Below the pieces are notes generated by a model. It worked only from the letters and a program-made list of their open reading frames with translations. It was not told the DNA's origin and did no database searches. From the sequence record NC_021529.2: a DNA stretch of 64,000 bases, one strand, 5' to 3'. Below, piece after piece: positions 14,068 to 63,517 of this stretch. Position 1 is the stretch's first letter; every line of letters begins with the position of its first letter. Position numbers and translations under genes: made by a program.

Positions 14068-15726
14068 TCATGGTGTTAGAGGACTACGCTCTTTAACCAA
14101 TCGTTCTTCGTCAACCGTTGGTTCGGCTGCACGCATGAAGTCAGCGACTTCAGTTAGTTCATGAATTCGTTCTTGTCGTTTACGTTCAGAAAGAACACTG
14201 AATTTTTCATGCTTGTTCTTTTTCTTCAGTCTGATGACTGCATCGAATTCAGAAAGTTGAATCAGCTCAGCTTCAAACAATGTATTGCGATTGATGATGA
14301 ATTCGCAATCACCTTTCTTCCCATGCTTACCTGTTGCAAGAATCGGCAACCCTTCAGCTTCGATTACAAACACAACGTTCAATTTCTTATCAGTTTCAAG
14401 CATATCTAGCATTGTTGATTTGCTATTTTTATCGATTGCATTCACGATAGTTTTCGATGATGATTCAACGAAGTTACATGCAACAATAGGGTTTGTTGAT
14501 GATGAGATAAACGCAGTAGACGCAAATACCCCAGATTCAAGAATCGCACCAACTCGCTTGCTGCTCATTTCAGCACCACGGTACAATGTCATTGCACTAG
14601 CAGATTTACCCGCCTCAGCAAACGCATAATCGAGACGCTTAATGATGTCTGATGCTTTATCAGATTCAATGCCGTGTACCAATGCTTCATTCACTTTCCA
14701 CGCATATCGCGACGCAGAATAGCGAGAAATTGCAGCTTGCGTAAGCGACCCAAGCCCAGCGAATGAATCTTCTTGCATCAATAGCATAGAAAGACGCTCA
14801 TATTGCGCTTCAAGAGCACGAGAACGCGATTCAAGTAAGCAGTTGAATACATCACTAGGGTTTTTAGATTCGTGCATGTACGAGTTGATAGAGTTAGCAA
14901 GAACTGGTAGCTCAAGATTCATGTCAATCAATCCTTGTGCAGCCATTGCAATTTTCGACTCAGATTCAGTTAATGCAATTTCAGTTAAACGCGCATTGTG
15001 TGATGTGCTGTGATGCGATTCAAGTTGCGGCATTTGAAGAACTGCGTTCGGAACACGAGCAGCAGGATTGTCGCCAACCCACGTATCAAGAACAACGTCG
15101 TCGTAATCATCATATTCAGCACCAGCAGTAACGATGATTGTTTTCTTGCTTGAAATGTCAGTTTCTTGCGACATTTTAGCAGCAATCATGTTTACCGTTT
15201 CTTCAGACGCTTCGAATAGCTTGTCAGCGTTGTATCCTGGTTTTGTGATGACGAAGTAGCTGAAATCATCAACCATTTCAGATGTACCATCGTTAACGAT
15301 TTTAGTCGTCTCGCAGCCATAGCGTAGCTTTTTGAATAGCGTTTTTACGCGCATGTCAAACATTTTACCACTGCCAAGCTTTTGAATTCGCATCGATACG
15401 ACGTTTGCACGACGACTAAGCATGAAGTCGTAAACAAGCGTTACGATAGTTTCAATTAGTTTTTGCTGATCGCCCATTTCACGAATAGTCAACCCGCCTT
15501 TCTTTCCGCGCATAGCAGAAACAGTGCAGAACCAGCTACGTTTGCCACGATTGCCGATGTCTGATTTGGTTTTAGTAGTGAACGAAACAACGATGTCCCT
15601 AGCTTCGCCTTTCATATCGATCACAAAGAATTTGTTTTCTTTGGTCGAGCGAGCCGGATAGTAGTCGTATGTCGCGCTCATGTTTTCTGTTAATTGTTGA
15701 TATCCAATCATTTTGTATAGACTCAC
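14068..15726 (-). CDS. alt: Alt-like NAD:protein ADP-ribosyltransferase
   Basis: TLYRG, FISSS and DCEFIINRN match the R-S-E ART motifs; next to gene 30 as in T4; start could be 15711. Confidence 0.85.
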   Translation of the reverse strand: MSLYKMIGYQQLTENMSATYDYYPARSTKENKFFVIDMKGEARDIVVSFTTKTKSDIGNRGKRSWFCTVSAMRGKKGGLTIREMGDQQKLIETIVTLVYDFMLSRRANVVSMRIQKLGSGKMFDMRVKTLFKKLRYGCETTKIVNDGTSEMVDDFSYFVITKPGYNADKLFEASEETVNMIAAKMSQETDISSKKTIIVTAGAEYDDYDDVVLDTWVGDNPAARVPNAVLQMPQLESHHSTSHNARLTEIALTESESKIAMAAQGLIDMNLELPVLANSINSYMHESKNPSDVFNCLLESRSRALEAQYERLSMLLMQEDSFAGLGSLTQAAISRYSASRYAWKVNEALVHGIESDKASDIIKRLDYAFAEAGKSASAMTLYRGAEMSSKRVGAILESGVFASTAFISSSTNPIVACNFVESSSKTIVNAIDKNSKSTMLDMLETDKKLNVVFVIEAEGLPILATGKHGKKGDCEFIINRNTLFEAELIQLSEFDAVIRLKKKNKHEKFSVLSERKRQERIHELTEVADFMRAAEPTVDEERLVKERSPLTP

Positions 15727-15752: not shown

Positions 15753-15874
15753 GTAGTTAGTGAAGCTTGATTAAAAAAATACCACTTTTTGTTTAAAAAG
15801 TGCTTGCAATGTCCATCTGATAGTCGTAATATGTGTTCATCGAAACGAAATACACAAACATGAGAGTACAAATT

Positions 15875-16387
15875 ATGAATGCACAAACAATGACTAACGA
15901 ACAAATTGCTAAACTATTCGACATGAAACTTTCATCAAATGGGTTTCAAGCGATTGACAAAAAAGGTCGTGGTCATTTTCTAACAGATTTGCGTCAACGA
16001 GTCATGAAAGCTGAGAAGACTAAAGCGAAAGCAACAAAAACTCGTAAAGTTCGCGAAGAGCAAGAACCATCAGTATCGGCTGAAGATCTGCTTCATGAAC
16101 TTCAATCAGAATCAAGTGATTACTGGTTCATTCGTGACACTCAACCTGGCATGGATTCGCTTACTCATGGCTTAAATGTGTACGTTTCTGCTGGCAAGCC
16201 TGATCACCATCGTCTAATTGTGCGTAGCAATCAACTCTCAATGAAAGAAATTGACCGTGAACTAGGTTATTTGAACCCTCGCAAACAAGAAGAAGGTCAT
16301 CATCGTGCGAAAACAACTGTGTTTTTCTCGAACAAAACAGCGAAAGAAATCGTTGAGATTGTTGAAAAACTTAAAGAACTAAGTTAA
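15875..16387 (+). CDS. Hypothetical early protein
   Basis: Behind sigma70-like TTGCAA...TAATAT and ATCGAAACGA leader. Confidence 0.7.
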   Translation: MNAQTMTNEQIAKLFDMKLSSNGFQAIDKKGRGHFLTDLRQRVMKAEKTKAKATKTRKVREEQEPSVSAEDLLHELQSESSDYWFIRDTQPGMDSLTHGLNVYVSAGKPDHHRLIVRSNQLSMKEIDRELGYLNPRKQEEGHHRAKTTVFFSNKTAKEIVEIVEKLKELS

Positions 16388-17314: not shown

Positions 17315-17326
17315 TTCTCTCAATCA

Positions 17327-17346
17327 GCCCCGAAAGGGGCTTTTTT
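17327..17346 (+). terminator. Intrinsic terminator
   Basis: GCCCC-GAAA-GGGGC plus T6. Confidence 0.85.
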
Positions 17347-17353
17347 AGGTTGA

Positions 17354-17427
17354 GCGGAAAATTCCGCATCATCTTAGTAGTATTAGTAGTTTTAGTGATA
17401 TTAGAGATATTAGTAAAATTAGTTTAA
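17354..17427. repeat. Hairpin plus six phased 9-bp TTAG repeats, copy 1
   Basis: GCGGAA-AA-TTCCGC; TTAG at 17374, 17383, 17392, 17401, 17410, 17419. Confidence 0.9.
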
Positions 17428-17469
17428 CAAACGCCTTGACAATCGTATAATATACGTCGAGGTGATGAA

Positions 17470-17709
17470 ATGATAACGATATACACAATTCCTAACTGCG
17501 ACGGCTGTCGCCACGCTATTTCCCTCTGTAAGTTCAAAAACGTCCCGTACACTGTAATCGAGTTGCAGTCTCAATCAGACATCGATAAATTGCATACACG
17601 CCTTGGCGGTGTTCGCAATATACGAGTGCCATTAGCAATGCATGGTGATGACTACATTGGTCATTTACCAGAATTGAAGAAATGGATCGATGCTAATCTG
17701 TATAAATAA
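17470..17709 (+). CDS. nrdC: Glutaredoxin
   Basis: YTIPNCDGC active site, VP motif, YIG. Confidence 0.85.
   Translation: MITIYTIPNCDGCRHAISLCKFKNVPYTVIELQSQSDIDKLHTRLGGVRNIRVPLAMHGDDYIGHLPELKKWIDANLYK
17701..17708 (+). promoter_or_regulatory. T4-type late promoter for gp24
   Basis: Exact TATAAATA. Confidence 0.8.
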
Positions 17710-22167: not shown

Positions 22168-22526
22168 TGCAAGAAACACCAGATTTACTTCAAGACGATG
22201 AGATTGTTGACGTTGTTGACGTTGTTGAAGATCAAGAAGTTCTAGACTATCTTGATGAAATGCAACTACGTCGCAAAGCTCTAATCGAGAAAGAAGCTCA
22301 GCGTCGAATCAAAAAGAATTCACGCGAGATCAAACGTCTACGAAAGCACGCTGAAAAGTGTCTAATCGAAGACAATAAAGATGGTTACATCTATGCGATT
22401 CGTAAGTTGCGTTCGATTACTGGTCAACCCGTCGCTGACGATGTGCTTGAAACTCTTTGGAAAACTAGTCGAGATCAAGTGCTAACTATCATTCGTTCAT
22501 TCGCTGAATCTAAAGCGGACATGTAA
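22167..22526 (+). CDS. Conserved T4-like protein (a-gt.4-like)
   Basis: EIKRLRKHAEKCL...YAIRKLR...LWKTSR; lies between 55 and 47 as in T4. Confidence 0.6.
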   Translation: MQETPDLLQDDEIVDVVDVVEDQEVLDYLDEMQLRRKALIEKEAQRRIKKNSREIKRLRKHAEKCLIEDNKDGYIYAIRKLRSITGQPVADDVLETLWKTSRDQVLTIIRSFAESKADM

Positions 22527-52907: not shown

Positions 52908-53584
52908 ATAGCGTACAAGATAAATCAGTTCTAATGGGTGATGAATTACTTTTCAGTGAAAGCGAATGGGTTCCATTCGATACGATGAACACTGAAAAGA
53001 AAATTCTATCAAACCCAATATTCGACGAAGGTCTGAACAGAATTATCAAGCAGTACACTCCGAAAACAGACACAGCGTTTATTTCGCTGTGTACTACTAC
53101 TCGACCATATGAAAATAGTCGCAAGTGGAAAACGTTCATGGAAACGTTTGGTAGTAGTGCTGACTTGATTGTTATTTCGAACGGCGGGGTAATACCACAG
53201 CAGTTTTGGCACAGTTATCCGTATCTGAACTACGATGGTGACCCAAAAGTCAATCCACAAACTGAACTTTATTGTGAAATCTGTGAAGAACGTGTTTATC
53301 GTTTCTTCAGTCAGGTGAAGTTCAAAAACATCGTCGCGAACTTTAAGCACGTACAACGTAACACTGAAGCAATCAAGAGCGCGTTGAAGCGACTTAAAGA
53401 CGACGGTCACATTGAAAACTATGTTGTTCTACCAACTGTTGAGCAGTATGAAGAATTGCAGTCTCGTGGGTTCCCGAAAGGGAAAGTTTTCCCAGATGTC
53501 GATGATAAGATACTTGAACACTTGCGTTCGGCAGTACATTCGTACTCGCCACCGAAAGAAAATAGCTTAGCTAACTTCTTTTAG
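52904..53584 (+). CDS. ArcS/DUF5591-like protein
   Basis: FISLCTTTRPYENSRKW and VISNGGVIP..F..SYP..NYD resemble the archaeosine synthase core; position in cluster. Confidence 0.6.
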   Translation: MNSVQDKSVLMGDELLFSESEWVPFDTMNTEKKILSNPIFDEGLNRIIKQYTPKTDTAFISLCTTTRPYENSRKWKTFMETFGSSADLIVISNGGVIPQQFWHSYPYLNYDGDPKVNPQTELYCEICEERVYRFFSQVKFKNIVANFKHVQRNTEAIKSALKRLKDDGHIENYVVLPTVEQYEELQSRGFPKGKVFPDVDDKILEHLRSAVHSYSPPKENSLANFF

Positions 53585-53640
53585 TGTTTAAATACAACTC
53601 TCATCGTGTATAATACATTCTCAACAAGTGAGGAAATAGA

Positions 53641-54315
53641 ATGGCATTTAATAAAGAGAAATGCGACGCTGAACTAGGTCGCAAAATTGAAGAACATCTT
53701 CGTGAAATCGGTATGAACACACCAATGCGTGAAGATAACGGTATCACTGATGATGTGAAAATTCAATACATCGAATCGTCTTTCACTGACATCATGAATG
53801 TGTTGGGTTTAGATTTATCTGACGATTCGCTTGTTGACACGCCACGTCGTGTAGCAAAAATGCTAGTTAAAGAGACAATGTGGGGTCTGAAGCCAGAGAA
53901 CTTTCCTAAGTGTACTGCAATCGACAACAAGATGAACTACGATGAGATTGTATGTGAAACTGGTATTACTGTCATGTCGCAGTGTGAACATCACTTCGTG
54001 ACAATTGATGGTAAAGCAACAGTTGCTTACATCCCTAACAAGAAAGTTCTTGGCTTGTCTAAGATGAATCGCATTGTTGAGTATTTCAGTCGTCGCCCTC
54101 AAGTGCAAGAGCGTTTAACGATTCAAATCGCTGAAGCTCTAAAGCTTATCTTAGAAACTGACAACGTAGCAGTAGTTCTAGACTGTGAACACTATTGTGT
54201 TAAGTCTCGTGGCGTTGAAGATCACACATCAAGCACGGTGACAAGTAGCTTGTCTGGTGTGTTTCGAACAAAGCCCGAAGCACGTGCTGAGTTCATGGCA
54301 CTAGCAAGAAAGTAA
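53641..54315 (+). CDS. folE: GTP cyclohydrolase I
   Basis: DTPRRVAKM, SQCEHHF, VLGLSK, RRPQVQERLT, HYCVKSRG. Confidence 0.97.
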   Translation: MAFNKEKCDAELGRKIEEHLREIGMNTPMREDNGITDDVKIQYIESSFTDIMNVLGLDLSDDSLVDTPRRVAKMLVKETMWGLKPENFPKCTAIDNKMNYDEIVCETGITVMSQCEHHFVTIDGKATVAYIPNKKVLGLSKMNRIVEYFSRRPQVQERLTIQIAEALKLILETDNVAVVLDCEHYCVKSRGVEDHTSSTVTSSLSGVFRTKPEARAEFMALARK

Positions 54316-54400
54316 ATCAGAAACGCACATTATGTGCGTTTTTTTGTTTAAGTAGTTCATAAAAATGATAATATAATTGAGCTAACAAGAGAGGTTTACA

Positions 54401-55795
54401 TTGATTATTGAATACGTAATGTCAGCGACTGGACATGCTCGTCTTAGTACTGCATATAAGCTTAGAGATAAAGTTGATATAACTTATCTCCGAGACATTT
54501 TAAACGCTGCACAAAACTTAGACGGCGTTCACAAGATCAGTATGCTTTATAACGCATACACTGAGAAGAAAATTGGTCGAGAACTGCGTGAGATTTTTGG
54601 TGATTCAGTTTACAAGATTCACGTTGACTCTGGCGGTCTACAGATGATCACCCTCGGACTCGACAACACACCAGAATTACGTGCTGGTGTTTACAAGAAT
54701 CAAGCAGAATCTGGTGACATTGGTATGTGTTTCGATGAAATCCCAATTCACAACACGTCGAAAGGTGGTGGTGCTGCACGATTAAACGCGAACGATAAAG
54801 TATTCATCAGCGACATGGCATATGAATATGGTGTTCGTTCTGGCAAGAACATCAAAGATCAGATAGAAGCATATCTTGCAGATGAAAGTCAGTGCAAACC
54901 GTATGTAATCTTTCATGGTAACACTGAAGAAGACTACATGAATTACTGTGATGGTATGATGTCTCAGCTTAAAGGGCTTGAGCATCACATTGCTGGCTGT
55001 GCGGTTTCTGGTGCTGCGATTGGGTATGATTCTCGTGAAACAATCGACATGATGAGCGTTGTTCGTAAACTGAACATCCCAGAACACATCAAAAAGTCTG
55101 TTCACATGCTTGGGTTTGGTTCTGTCAAGCGTCTACTACCGTCTATCGCTCTTATACGCAGCGGTTACTTCGGTGACGACTTTCATATCAGCTACGACTC
55201 TTCGACTCACACGGGCTGTTTGACGAATCGTGAGTACACGGATAAGCTTGGTCGTCGAATTAAGATTGAGGGACGCCCGCAGAAGAAGAACAAAGATGTT
55301 CAAGACGCATTTTCTATGATGCTGAATGCTCGTAACCCAGGCAGTGCGGTTGATGAATCGAAAGACTCTGAATCAACAGAGCTTCTTGACAACATGTTGT
55401 CTGAAGTATGGGGTCGATTCTCACATGTAATTCCGCGTTCTGAATCTGAATTCAAAGATTTTGCAACTAAAATGTGGTTTAAGAAGCTGAATCGAGAATC
55501 GTTATCAGAAGAAGATCAAGTGTTTGAAGTTGCATGTAATCTGTGTATCATTCTTTCACAAATCCTCAACTTTCAAGCGATTGTTTCTGAAGCATTCGAC
55601 TTGGACACTGATGGTAAAGAACGTGACGGGTTCGTCAAATGGTCGTCTAAACGTCGAATGTCAGTGCTTGATGACATCATCACGCATGATTCTCCAGAAG
55701 ACTTTGAGAACTGGTACAAGAATAACAGCAAACAATTGCCGTCTATTCGTATTCGACGCGGTACAACTGCTGAATACCCAGATTTTAAATCATAA
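54401..55795 (+). CDS. dpdA: DpdA-like (TGT-fold) DNA guanine transglycosylase
   Basis: VDSGGLQM, MCFDEIP, HMLGFG, SYDSST match TGT catalytic positions; no C-terminal CxCxxC zinc motif. Confidence 0.8.
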   Translation: MIIEYVMSATGHARLSTAYKLRDKVDITYLRDILNAAQNLDGVHKISMLYNAYTEKKIGRELREIFGDSVYKIHVDSGGLQMITLGLDNTPELRAGVYKNQAESGDIGMCFDEIPIHNTSKGGGAARLNANDKVFISDMAYEYGVRSGKNIKDQIEAYLADESQCKPYVIFHGNTEEDYMNYCDGMMSQLKGLEHHIAGCAVSGAAIGYDSRETIDMMSVVRKLNIPEHIKKSVHMLGFGSVKRLLPSIALIRSGYFGDDFHISYDSSTHTGCLTNREYTDKLGRRIKIEGRPQKKNKDVQDAFSMMLNARNPGSAVDESKDSESTELLDNMLSEVWGRFSHVIPRSESEFKDFATKMWFKKLNRESLSEEDQVFEVACNLCIILSQILNFQAIVSEAFDLDTDGKERDGFVKWSSKRRMSVLDDIITHDSPEDFENWYKNNSKQLPSIRIRRGTTAEYPDFKS

Positions 55796-55870
55796 GTTGT
55801 TTAATATATCATGAAATTGGCTATAATGAGTGTTCAGGATGAGCACTCAATAGCTTCGAGAGGTTATAAA

Positions 55871-56587
55871 ATGAAAGTAGTTTCTGTTTTAAGCGGTGGT
55901 CTTGACAGTACAATTCTCACATACAAGCTAGTAAATGATTTCGGTGCAGACAATGTGTTTGCTCTATCGTTCTACTACGGTCAAAAACAGTCAATTGAGC
56001 TAGAAAAAGCTAAGTTGACGTGTCAAAAGCTCGGCATCGAGCATCGTCTAATCGATATTTCGTTCTTAGGTGAAGTTGTAGCGCCAGTCTGTGCGAATAT
56101 CGCAGGCTCAGAAGTTGCAATGCCGACTATTCAAGACGTTCTAGGCGACCCTCAGCCGCCAACTGAAGTTCCATATCGTAACATGCTATTGAATACAATT
56201 GCGTTCTCGTTTGCTCAAGCAAATGGTTGTTCTGCTGTGTTCACTGGCATTCAAGTGCATGACGCATACGGGTATTGGGACTGTACACAAGACTTCCTTG
56301 ATGGTATGAATCAAATCTCATCGTTGAATCGCCAGCATGAAATCACACTACACGCACCGTTTGCTCAGATGTCAAAAGCAGATGAAATCAAGATTGGTCT
56401 TCTGCTAGGTGTCCCGTTCGAAGATAGTCTAACTTGTTACGACCCGAACGAAGCAGGTGAAAGTTGTGGTGTATGTCCATCATGTGCTGAACGCATCATG
56501 AACTTTGGCAAAGTCGGCATCAAAGATTCTGCGCCATATTCGAAACATATCCCATGGGAACAAGTATTTGCTAAGGCAGGTCATTAA
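55871..56587 (+). CDS. queC: 7-cyano-7-deazaguanine (preQ0) synthase
   Basis: VLSGGLDST, YGQKQ..EL, VPYRN, YWDC, CY...CGVCPSC.ER. Confidence 0.96.
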   Translation: MKVVSVLSGGLDSTILTYKLVNDFGADNVFALSFYYGQKQSIELEKAKLTCQKLGIEHRLIDISFLGEVVAPVCANIAGSEVAMPTIQDVLGDPQPPTEVPYRNMLLNTIAFSFAQANGCSAVFTGIQVHDAYGYWDCTQDFLDGMNQISSLNRQHEITLHAPFAQMSKADEIKIGLLLGVPFEDSLTCYDPNEAGESCGVCPSCAERIMNFGKVGIKDSAPYSKHIPWEQVFAKAGH

Positions 56588-57195
56588 TGTGCGGTTTATT
56601 TGCTGCTAGAAGCAAGCAAGAGCTTATTGAATTATCAAAAAGCAATCTACATCGTGGTTCGCGTACTCACTCTGTGAGTACGTTTAAGAACGGTCACGTG
56701 TCAGTACATAAATTCACTGGTGCATTCGATCCTGTCAATGTCCCTGACAGTGCAGATTTCTATATCTGTCACGTACAAGCACCAACTGGAACTAGTGCGC
56801 AAGCACATCCAGCTATTGTAACAGTCGATGAGAACGGTCAGTTACACGACTCACACGTGTGGCATAATGGCATTCTCAAAGATCATTACATGAAAAAGCA
56901 GACTCAAGATTGGGATACTGCACACATTGCTGAAGCTATTTGCTATGGCAAATTGAATGAGCTTGACGGTACATTCGCGTGTTTTCACTTCATCAACGGC
57001 AATTTACGTGTGTTTCGTAATGAAATCAGCCCGTTGTTCATGAACGAAGACGGCACAGCATTCAGTAGCACTAAGACGATTCTAACACCGTATCATGTTG
57101 ATGCGAATAAAGTGTTTAATATCGACTTGCGAACATTTAAACTATCGGTAGTGAGTGAGTTCAAGACACTCGAAAATCCATATTTCTTTTTGTAA
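56587..57195 (+). CDS. Stand-alone class II (Ntn) glutamine amidotransferase
   Basis: N-terminal MCG, CHVQAPT, WHNGIL, WDT, DGTFA; TAATG coupling to queC. Confidence 0.85.
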   Translation: MCGLFAARSKQELIELSKSNLHRGSRTHSVSTFKNGHVSVHKFTGAFDPVNVPDSADFYICHVQAPTGTSAQAHPAIVTVDENGQLHDSHVWHNGILKDHYMKKQTQDWDTAHIAEAICYGKLNELDGTFACFHFINGNLRVFRNEISPLFMNEDGTAFSSTKTILTPYHVDANKVFNIDLRTFKLSVVSEFKTLENPYFFL

Positions 57196-61648: not shown

Positions 61649-61662
61649 TCAGAAACGGATAA

Positions 61663-61738
61663 GGCGGAAAAATTCCGTCTCATCTTAGTAGTATTAGTAG
61701 TTTTAGTGAAGTTAGAGATATTAGAAGTATTAGGAGAT
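61663..61738. repeat. Hairpin plus six phased 9-bp TTAG repeats, copy 2
   Basis: GGCGGAA-AAA-TTCCGTC; TTAG at 61685, 61694, 61703, 61712, 61721, 61730. Confidence 0.9.
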
Positions 61739-61821
61739 TGAAAATAACTTGAAAAAGTTGTTGACAGTCTCCTTTTTGATCATACTATACAGTTATCGAA
61801 ACAAACTATTGAGTGAAGATT

Positions 61822-62346
61822 ATGAACTTGCGTGAACGTGAAGAAGAGCTAAAAGCACTATCAGTACATCCAGATGACGTTGAAATTGCTGTCACTGTAT
61901 CGTGTGCTGGTATGAGCAATCACTACACTGTCTGTCCTTTCGAGTTCAAAGACTTTTTAGACGAACATGAAGGTACATCCTATATAGCATTTGAATGGCA
62001 CAATTTCCCAAATGATTTGCAAGACGAAGAACTAGACTTCGATGAGTTAGATGCATTGTTCAGCCTCGAAGATAGTCAGCGTGAAATCTGCGAACTGTTA
62101 TACGATAATAGAGTTTGTATGTCTTATGAAGACGCTGCTGAGAAAGTCGAAGACTGTTGGGTGTTCGAAGGCACGAAAGAAGAATACGCAGAGCATGTAA
62201 CATCAGAGCTAATGGGAATTCGAAGTGAAGATATCCCTGCAATCTTACGCAGCAACATCAATTGGGGTGATGTATTCATCGATTTAGATGCTGACGGTAG
62301 CATCTTTGAATTATCACGAAACAGATACTTAACAGTGAATCAATAA
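61822..62346 (+). CDS. ArdA-like antirestriction protein
   Basis: Highly acidic; EEYAEHVTSELMG...IPAILRSNINWGDVFIDL resembles the ArdA C-terminal domain. Confidence 0.65.
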   Translation: MNLREREEELKALSVHPDDVEIAVTVSCAGMSNHYTVCPFEFKDFLDEHEGTSYIAFEWHNFPNDLQDEELDFDELDALFSLEDSQREICELLYDNRVCMSYEDAAEKVEDCWVFEGTKEEYAEHVTSELMGIRSEDIPAILRSNINWGDVFIDLDADGSIFELSRNRYLTVNQ

Positions 62347-62347
62347 T

Positions 62348-62920
62348 ATGAGTAGTACTAAAGGTAACGTCAACAAAGACGATTACTATGCTACACCATC
62401 TTGGATTGTTGAAGAGTTTCTACGCGAGTTTGAAGCTCGTATTCAACTCGATATGAGCATGGCAGAAATGTACGTGCTCGATCCATCGTGTGGTGGCTGT
62501 TCAGAACATGAAGCAGCGTATCCAGTAGCATACAAGAAAATGTATGGTGTTGACATCGACACGATGGATATTCGTGAAGATAGTCACGCTAATCTAATAG
62601 CGAATTATCTAGAAACAGATATCCCGGTCAAGTATTATGACATGATAATGACGAATCCGCCATTCAGCTTGTCTGTTGACTTTGCTGAGAAAGCACTTGC
62701 TGAGGTGAAATATGGTGGTTATGTTGTGATGTTGCAGCGTCTGAATTGGCTTGGTAGCATTAAGCGCAAACCGTTCTGGGACAAGATGCCATTAAAAGCT
62801 GTGCTTGTGCATCATCGCCGTCCGTCGTTTCACGGTACAAAAGGTACAGACTCGATTGAGTATGCTCATTTTGTGTTTCAGAAAGGGTACAATCAGTCTG
62901 CTAAATTGGTGGTGATATGA
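62348..62920 (+). CDS. DNA amino-methyltransferase (N6-A/N4-C type)
   Basis: DYYATP, VLDPSCGG, TNPPF. Confidence 0.9.
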   Translation: MSSTKGNVNKDDYYATPSWIVEEFLREFEARIQLDMSMAEMYVLDPSCGGCSEHEAAYPVAYKKMYGVDIDTMDIREDSHANLIANYLETDIPVKYYDMIMTNPPFSLSVDFAEKALAEVKYGGYVVMLQRLNWLGSIKRKPFWDKMPLKAVLVHHRRPSFHGTKGTDSIEYAHFVFQKGYNQSAKLVVI

Positions 62921-63129
62921 TTACTAAAGTTGACATATTTGACGGATGGCTTGATGTATTTGATGAACCACAACAAAACAAAATCGTTGATGGTACTACG
63001 TATTACAGATTATTTGGGTTTGTTTTGTTCAAACGCAACCGTAAGTTTGAAGTTGCAACACACAACTATAACATACATCTGTCGCCTGAGTGGCATCTAT
63101 ACATGTGGAGAGTAACACGTGTCATTTAA
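62917..63129 (+). CDS. Hypothetical protein
   Basis: ATGA overlap. Confidence 0.55.
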   Translation: MITKVDIFDGWLDVFDEPQQNKIVDGTTYYRLFGFVLFKRNRKFEVATHNYNIHLSPEWHLYMWRVTRVI

Positions 63130-63154
63130 AAACATGAGAAAAATAAGGGAATAC

Positions 63155-63517
63155 ATGTCAAATTTCAAAGCAAATCTAGTAGGTCGCGGCACAATCGAAG
63201 TCAATGGTAAAAAATACCAAGGTACGAGCGTGACTGTGAAGAACGGCAAAGTCATCGTTGATGGTCGTCTGCAAGAAGATGTGTCTGATTGTCAAACTGT
63301 GACTGTTAACATCGAAGGCAGTGCAACGCTTGTACAAAACGAAAACGGCAATGTTACTATTGGCGGTGAAGTGAAAGGCGATGTTAAGACAACTAATGGC
63401 GATATTCATTGCTTGAACGTTCATGGTAATGTTAAGACAACCAACGGTGATATCGATTGTTACGATGTTGCTGGTGATGTTGAAACTGTTAATGGAGATA
63501 TTAGTCGAAAATGGTAA
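63155..63517 (+). CDS. Beta-repeat protein (DUF4097-like)
   Basis: Repeated G(D/N)VKTTNGDI units. Confidence 0.7.
   Translation: MSNFKANLVGRGTIEVNGKKYQGTSVTVKNGKVIVDGRLQEDVSDCQTVTVNIEGSATLVQNENGNVTIGGEVKGDVKTTNGDIHCLNVHGNVKTTNGDIDCYDVAGDVETVNGDISRKW

Follow-up and report, generated by a model that had tools for sequence, protein, structure and literature searches.

A hairpin-headed array of phased TTAG repeats at six intergenic sites of Vibrio phage nt-1: a possible origin-like DNA-opening module of KVP40-type phages

What reads a short hairpin and a strictly phased array of TTAG repeats that recur between the genes of one phage genome, and for what purpose? The question is raised by Vibrio phage nt-1, a 247.5-kb T4-type phage of the KVP40 group, and by the 64,000-nucleotide window analysed here, which comprises the last 64 kb of its genome (record positions 183512-247511; 100% identical to NC_021529.2/HQ317393.2). 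In two intergenic gaps of this window a structure-prone palindrome is followed by a TCATC linker and six 9-bp units, each beginning with TTAG. Judged from its sequence and its distribution, this element appears to be a cis-acting DNA module specific to the KVP40/nt-1 lineage. A phased, sequence-specific, multimeric protein probably reads its array, and we tentatively propose that the element is an origin-like DNA-opening site.

The copy first noticed, here called c6 (copies c1-c6 are named after the gene downstream), has exactly the letters that a first-pass annotation had given: GGCGGAA-AAA-TTCCGTC at 61663-61679, then TCATC and six units, in order TTAGTAGTA, TTAGTAGTT, TTAGTGAAG, TTAGAGATA, TTAGAAGTA and TTAGGAGAT (Table 1). 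The same annotation had noted a second copy some 44 kb away; this copy, c5, sits 44,311 bp upstream of c6, and units 1, 2 and 4 of the two are indeed identical. Within the window, an 18-base core and a four-unit TTAG-N5 pattern occur at c5 and c6 only, dinucleotide-preserving shuffles of the window give 0.00 expected matches, and Tandem Repeats Finder calls both arrays with a period of 9. In predicted folds the stem reaches 8-10 pairs by means of the first bases of TCATC, and the array itself is unstructured. The annotated number of two copies is right for the window; the whole nt-1 genome, as a piecewise scan of the rest of the record revealed, holds six. Each of them has the orientation of its flanking genes. 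Copy c1 is located in the hyperplastic region at 51-56 kb, the other positions being conserved gaps of the core genome.

KVP40 and VH7D carry six copies apiece at the same six sites as nt-1, and F86, the most divergent relative fetched whole, carries five, all of them six-unit, with c1 lacking. The element is also retained in 6E35.1a and 1.081.O. In 1.081.O the whole element forms a tandem duplicate upstream of the dNMP kinase gene, with seven and six units and starts 164 bp apart (1494-1600 and 1658-1750 of the fetched stretch). BLAST located the element in 51 phage records, all of Vibrio phages, at 5-7 places per near-full-length genome. A strict 36-base pattern had zero exact matches in 185,579 bacterial and archaeal genomes, and a host-derived motif or a prophage was rejected on this ground. 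Scanning of viral contigs with a bare five-unit TTAG-N5 pattern returned unrelated tandem repeats, mostly from giant-virus bins, and the metagenome scan yielded three true relatives among the 120 loci listed. No description of the array was found in the literature searched in full text, a scope that does not extend to the original KVP40 genome paper. All conservation figures below refer to 29 non-redundant copies, taken from seven phages and three metagenome contigs.

The array is constrained in nearly every column. Throughout units 1-5 TTAG at positions 1-4 is 100% invariant, position 5 excludes C but accepts T, A or G, and position 6 invariably holds A or G; purines fill position 7 in about 85% of units, and A or T fills position 8 in about 95% and position 9 in 121 of 145. 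Over units 1-6, C accounts for 20 of the 870 letters (2.3%) at variable positions. The claim of the annotation that only TTAG and the 9-bp phase are kept between copies is therefore too narrow: both are kept, and so are the purine at position 6, the exclusion of C from position 5 and the general scarcity of C. The TCATC linker and most of unit 1 are invariant, and conservation falls off toward unit six. Indels breaking the 9-bp phase are absent (0/29 copies), and six-slot arrays make up 27 of the 29. TTAG units number six in 21 copies, five with a sixth slot of TTCG or TTTG in another five, five in one copy and seven in one; in one further copy a seventh slot starts with CTAG. Selection on repeat number and phase had been proposed with the proviso that free variation among relatives would contradict it, and no such variation was seen.

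Conservation of the element exceeds that of neighbouring genes: across the 132 bp of c6 and its promoter, identity to KVP40 is 94%, compared with 82% for the surrounding 2.3 kb. Likeness amounts to 84.0% for copies within a genome, 83.0% for orthologous and 81.2% for non-orthologous copies, and this near-equality of all classes suggests that variation is bounded and not clock-like. All five F86 copies have C at position 9 of unit 2, as against 1/24 elsewhere (Fisher 5e-5), and neighbouring columns differ among the F86 copies. Such a genome-wide change of one column looks like sites tracking one trans-acting reader, gene conversion being also possible. From the fixed phase and number, together with the wider column constraint, we infer a multimeric sequence-specific binder, in agreement with what had been suggested for c6.

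Constraint extends to the hairpin. Its stem has one form in 22 copies, and in KVP40 c3, VH7D c3 and VH7D c6 both central G-C pairs are flipped to C-G; the stem of F86 c5 pairs through two wobble pairs. In the alignment of the 29 copies (A2), 85% of cells are paired and two pairs change on both sides. The observed covariation score is attained by none of 500 shuffles and is higher than that of any slid register. This pattern indicates that the hairpin structure is selected, the pair flips probably representing one or two evolutionary events only. In 14 of the 29 copies a box containing GCGAAGC precedes the array by 40-47 nt; this heptamer is known to form an unusually stable mini-hairpin in single-stranded DNA. 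No intrinsic terminator was called at the element's own hairpin, which runs straight into TCATC and the array, and identity as an intrinsic terminator was dropped. Rfam 15 covariance models at a permissive threshold gave three chance-level matches (E 1-7), none of them over the element, and a known RNA family was dropped likewise.

At the level of duplex DNA the arrays are exceptional. Per 54 bp, the nearest-neighbour energies of the six nt-1 arrays lie between -53.8 and -60.9 kcal/mol, whereas the genome averages -70.1 (standard deviation 3.8), so that the arrays rank in the least stable 0.00-1.3% of all 54-bp segments of nt-1; no other segment is as unstable as the c5 array (fraction 0.0000). 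Segments of 54 nt that lack G or lack C, yet contain at least 10 of the other base, occur at three loci genome-wide, all of them arrays. The six sites are over-dispersed on the circular 247.5-kb map, with a minimum gap of 26.4 kb (P = 0.006) and a maximum gap of 53.6 kb (P = 0.002), in a test that assumes uniform site choice and ignores the restriction to intergenic gaps.

Table 1. Positions of the six nt-1 copies and of features around c5 and c6 (window coordinates unless given as record)
Feature	Position	Strand	Remarks
Copy c1	record 51325	+	5 units; before lipoprotein gene, hyperplastic region
Copy c3	record 104120	-	6 units; gp3 / dNMP kinase gap
Copy c2	record 130564	+	5 units; gp12 / wac gap
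Copy c4	record 157688	-	5 units; gp35 / uvsY gap
Copy c5	record 200885	+	6 units; gap between SprT-like gene and nrdH-gene 55
Copy c6	record 245196	+	6 units; before ORF404-methyltransferase; copy first noticed
c5 upstream intrinsic terminator	17326..17347	+	canonical; stem-loop, then T-run
c5 hairpin	17354..17367	+	GCGGAA-AA-TTCCGC; from sequence and fold
c5 linker TCATC	17369..17373	+	
c5 array	17374..17427	+	six phased 9-bp TTAG units; zero C on top strand
c5 early-type promoter	17424..17451	+	TTAACA-16-TATAAT; -35 hexamer overlaps last array unit; drives nrdH (17470-17709), then gene 55
c6 hairpin	61662..61680	+	stem GGCGGAA/TTCCGTC with G-T wobble, AAA loop, one extra A-T pair; predicted by RNA and single-stranded DNA folds
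c6 linker TCATC	61680..61684	+	invariant in 29/29 copies; first bases lengthen stem; alignments A1, A2
c6 array	61685..61738	+	six phased 9-bp TTAG units; 14 G, zero C on top strand
c6 outer terminator-like hairpin	61733..61777	+	GGAGA of last unit pairs with TCTCC 61768-61772, T-run 61773-61777; encloses -35 hexamer; RNA fold
c6 promoter	61761..61788	+	TTGACA-16-TACTAT; sigma-70-type early; 22 bp past array; kept in KVP40, VH7D, F86, 6E35.1a (gaps 22, 22, 11, 19 bp)
ORF404	61822..62346	+	acidic 174-aa protein; first gene downstream of c6
ORF405, DNA methyltransferase	62348..62920	+	phrog_799

An intrinsic terminator lies at most 90 nt upstream of 18 of the 29 copies, and a sigma-70-type promoter follows the array in all c2-c6 copies at a gap of -5 to +22 bp, with scores of 7-11 of 12 (at least 9 in all but three). 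The distance between array and -35 hexamer varies between sites and, at one site, between phages (22, 22, 22, 11 and 19 bp at c6); at uvsY and nrdH the hexamer and the last array unit overlap. The TTGACA promoter that had been annotated next to c6, upstream of ORF404 and the methyltransferase gene, is present, but it does not stand for a fixed array-promoter geometry, and c1 has neither promoter nor terminator, its array leading straight into the next gene's ribosome-binding site and start codon. In the gap between gp12 and wac (record ~130640-130700) the order is terminator, element, an early-type promoter conserved in four phages and, directly before wac, TATAAATA, which we take to be a T4-type late-promoter motif. 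The terminator-like hairpin after the c6 array has compensatory variants, GGGGA/TCCCC in VH7D and TTAGAG/CTCTAA in F86, and the element may stand before a terminator or after it. Most commonly it is placed between terminator and promoter, in the least transcribed part of the intergenic gap, which favours a role at the DNA level. Sigma-54 enhancer logic was rejected, as no -24/-12-type element was visible downstream by eye. A Rho-loading site on the antisense transcript, made from the C-rich, G-free strand, was set aside from the sequence and general knowledge, most C following A and not a pyrimidine.

The promoter-early stem-loops (PeSLs) of T4-like phages, described for nt-1 itself (PMC4122927; PMC2839356), are cassettes repeated between genes in which a stem-loop precedes an early sigma-70-type promoter, and in this architecture the element resembles them. 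The PeSL promoter pattern, TTGYVH-N17-TAWWAT with a ribosome-binding site and start codon, is found at c2-c6 and is absent at c1. The PeSL stem-loop pattern (A3-4 G3 - loop - C3 T3-4) is seen neither in the GGCGGAA-AAA-TTCCGYC hairpin of the element nor in its pair-flipped form; a stem-loop of the published type, with a G-run/C-run stem and a T-run, stands just upstream of the element at four sites, c3-c5 among them. With its own hairpin unlike that of PeSLs and a PeSL stem-loop further upstream, the element looks like an insert inside the cassettes, between stem-loop and promoter. PeSLs are present in many copies, by preference in hyperplastic regions and beside indels or exchanges, whereas the element has 5-6 copies at conserved core positions, of which c1 is in a hyperplastic region and without a promoter and c6 falls at a homology breakpoint. 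No mention of a 9-bp array was found in the text of the nt-1 genome paper (PMC4122927).

The reading that we favour, if only tentatively, is that of an origin-like DNA-opening site. It draws on the few and well-spaced copies, the most meltable DNA of the genome, the structure-prone flank, the asymmetric strand, the shielding from transcription and the outward early promoter. Spelled out, and with the same reserve, the six modules may be replication origins of KVP40-type phages, each read by a dedicated putative initiator with about one protomer per 9-bp unit, which would melt the genome's least stable stretch of DNA next to an early promoter that fires outward. The putative protein, sequence-specific and probably phage-encoded, would read the units one by one with about six protomers, binding being nucleated at the hairpin-proximal, best-conserved units and then spreading along the phase. 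The bound array, as the most easily melted DNA in the genome, would mark the opening site; the adjoining early promoter would fire away from it, and the terminator would usually shield it from incoming transcription. Once the array is opened, its C-free strand and the hairpin would become available for loading of the replication machinery. Protein binding, its multimericity and every step at the origin are what we infer from the features described above.

There is precedent in T4, which has at least five origins, situated in late-gene regions and dependent on nearby promoters; the uvsY promoter is the site of one of them, and direct repeats of undefined role stand at even spacing in oriE (PMC3016281). 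With one copy at uvsY and three at ends of late operons, the element fits this picture. As in the oriE iterons and in iteron plasmid origins, evenly spaced short direct repeats are found in a T4-type genome and are conserved in relatives (PMC3016281); as at oriE, the neighbourhood is one of late genes with an early promoter adjoining. In contrast to oriE, where the repeats are 12 nt long and present at one origin only, the 9-bp unit is common to six sites, and no adjacent initiator gene is evident. Iteron-like arrays have at least three phased direct repeats, here five to seven units in strict 9-bp phase in 29 copies, and iteron origins have AT-rich DNA that unwinds easily within or next to their repeats, here the arrays themselves. 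The cognate initiator of iteron origins is usually encoded nearby. Synteny with T4 oriF was rejected: in RB59, a T4-type phage, only 76 bp separate gene 25 from the uvsY gene behind it, which leaves no room for an array and makes the uvsY parallel positional only.

Several points weigh against an origin-like site. T4 origins share no common motif, and the unwinding element of oriF/oriG lies downstream of the promoter (PMC3016281), whereas the array is upstream. GC skew has no shift at any of the six sites and follows gene direction only, although two T4 origins are likewise outside skew shifts (PMC3016281). No binder or initiator was recognised among the genes adjoining the sites (wac, dNMP kinase, uvsY, nrdH, lipoprotein, ORF404), a search that did not include a genome-wide screen. 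Having neither terminator nor promoter, c1 must be transcribed as an intercistronic spacer, and the terminator-like hairpin after the c6 array makes it probable that this array is transcribed too. Of the 29 copies, 3-4 have a disrupted hairpin, and the wobble-preserving variants of the stem would be better suited to RNA than to DNA. The assumptions of the spacing test, named above, count here as well. Finally, multi-copy intergenic phage motifs are more often transcription signals than origins.

Nearly as likely as an origin-like site is an array for promoter control, its units being operator or activator sites, or an elaborate upstream element, that would tune one early or delayed-early promoter per site in a small regulon of the wac region, dNMP kinase, uvsY, nrdH-gene 55 and ORF404-methyltransferase. 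The proximity of a sigma-70-type promoter (-5 to +22 bp downstream) at all c2-c6 copies, the invariably shared direction of element and promoter, and the overlap of the last unit with the -35 hexamer at the uvsY and nrdH sites all point this way. Ribbon-helix-helix proteins, small cooperative DNA binders, occupy tandem 7-8-bp operator repeats in a comparable manner: short units follow each other without extra spacer just upstream of promoters, and the period is smaller than a helical turn, so that protomers would spiral round the DNA. The element differs from such operators in period, in motif and in its strict strand asymmetry. Mycobacteriophage stoperators, single 13-14-bp sites that occur in dozens of copies in temperate phages and are read by one phage protein, are similarly asymmetric and lie in one orientation across intergenic gaps; the element, unlike them, joins a hairpin to an array of six units and belongs to a T4-type phage that is lytic. 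Two published observations also support promoter control: PeSL cassettes have an AT-rich upstream region where the module sits (PMC4122927), and the presence of AsiA with no recognised MotA partner (PMC1524935) makes a further promoter-directed factor expected. This reading is weakened by the gap between array and -35 hexamer, fixed neither in length nor in helical phase, by c1 with no promoter at all, by the presence of the module on six of many early promoters only, and by the functionally unrelated genes downstream; nor does it account for the even spacing, the extreme instability or the C-free strand. An element acting at the RNA level is less likely. The hairpin would nucleate an oligomeric RNA-binding protein on the C-free UUAG repeats of read-through transcripts and so control their processing, stability, termination or translation. 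Ring-shaped attenuation proteins of Gram-positive hosts, TRAP and HutP, act on triplet-repeat RNA with a period of ~5-7 nt, and the element shares with their targets the UAG-containing repeats on unstructured RNA, one subunit per unit, and, at c6, a last unit overlapping a terminator-like hairpin. Since this last unit forms the 5' arm of a hairpin with compensatory changes, a bound protein could switch the hairpin. The covariation of the element's own hairpin, including G-U-type wobble variants (F86 c5, copy b of 1.081.O), the predicted lack of structure and near-absence of C in the array, and the location of the next gene's ribosome-binding site and start codon inside the c1 array are further points in favour. 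However, 18 of 29 copies lie between a strong upstream terminator and a downstream promoter, where an intergenic region is least transcribed, and not in a leader as the targets of TRAP and HutP do; the element is found on either side of the terminator, no Rfam family matches it, and the 9-nt period is unlike that of known triplet-repeat RNA binders.

A recombination cassette or selfish repeat, that is, a PeSL-like homology patch kept by gene conversion and used in module shuffling with no dedicated binder, seems improbable. As is known of PeSLs, one copy marks a homology breakpoint: at c6 the homology of nt-1 with the VH7D/ValKK3/phi-Grn1 group starts exactly at the hairpin (61662-61680) and the genes upstream are replaced, which makes the element a module boundary at this site. 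Further points in favour are the non-orthologous spread of hairpin variants, such as the pair-flipped stem of VH7D c6, a metagenomic copy whose arms do not match, in the manner of a recombinant, a likeness within genomes equal to that between orthologues, the tandem duplicate of 1.081.O and the documented presence of PeSLs in nt-1 itself (PMC4122927). A homology patch, though, needs no invariant tetranucleotide, fixed phase, six units, exclusion of C or covariation. The positions are conserved in gaps of the core genome and not in hyperplastic regions, there are only 5-6 copies, and the F86 change hits one column in all copies while neighbouring columns differ, which argues against simple homogenisation. 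Still more doubtful is site-specific DNA chemistry, in which the phage DpdA2 would insert 7-deazaguanine into the arrays, or the arrays would be nicked. The arrays melt easily and adjoin a hairpin, and hairpin loops are what TGT-family enzymes act on. Per million nucleotides, nt-1 DNA contains 232 dPreQ0, 72 dADG and 44 dG+ (PMC6884629); about 170 modified guanines per genome mean that modification must be rare and selective, and the six arrays hold 34 TTAG guanines, the six 54-nt windows 75 G on the G-rich strand. These counts agree in order of magnitude only, and a low modification level could simply reflect weak enzyme activity. By order of accession numbers, the 7-deazaguanine (preQ0/G+) genes including DpdA2 (YP_008125322, PMC6884629) seem to lie a few kb upstream of c6 (~53000-57000). 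A coding role, frame 1 of the array giving a Leu-x-x repeat peptide or a C-terminal membrane tail, was rejected as highly improbable. Frame 1 is open through most arrays, the nearest upstream stop is in frame with the array at c1, c4 and c6, and two annotated genes cover the c3 copy. Most copies, on the other hand, lack a start codon and are closed off by a stop in the same frame a short way upstream, a stop lies inside the KVP40 c2 array, the pair flips of the hairpin would alter the putative residues, and TTA is never replaced by a synonymous Leu codon in 145 units. The two annotated genes, nt-1 ORF204/VPFG_p12 (record 104096-104236, minus strand) and F86 VPHF86_0317 (195891-196028, minus strand), read frame 1 of the c3 array and are probably annotation artefacts.

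Of the genes that the first-pass annotation had placed behind the TTGACA promoter at c6, an ArdA-like and a methyltransferase gene, the latter is borne out (phrog_799). For ORF404 no Pfam family was found at E<=0.01 and no sequence match in PDB below E 0.25, and its PHROG, 15771, has no assigned function. An AlphaFold2 model (pLDDT 65, built from six sequences) has ArdA 2W82 as its best and only distinct Foldseek match in PDB (probability 0.99, E 0.018, TM 0.41-0.44). From this fold match, which has no counterpart among sequence families, ArdA-likeness is plausible but weak, and ORF404 would, equally weakly, resemble an ArdA-type DNA mimic rather than a DNA binder. Elsewhere in the window, an Alt ADP-ribosyltransferase gene is located at 14068-15726 on the minus strand, and a gene for an Alc-like "inhibitor of host transcription" at 15833-16387, just upstream of the SprT-like gene that precedes c5. 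Two other tandem repeats were noted: one of 48-bp period (2.1 copies, 74% matches) at 63380-63481, inside an open reading frame at 63119-63517, and a perfect 9-bp repeat of TTGTTGACG (2.8 copies) at 22204-22228, in a coding region and unrelated to the TTAG arrays.

The absence of exact matches to the strict 36-base pattern from bacteria and archaea makes the element usable as a sequence marker of the KVP40-type lineage. It also predicts a sequence-reading protein and names six sites at which occupancy, transcription and early DNA synthesis can be followed. The element bears, moreover, on the AsiA of the KVP40 group, for which a partner activator is not known (PMC1524935). T4-type phages are a classic model, yet their origins are without a known common motif (PMC3016281), and the element offers a concrete handle on them. 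If the proposed origin-like role is true, the six modules would form an origin set with one sequence in common, the first such set in a T4-like phage, and the origins of KVP40-type phages could be located from sequence alone.

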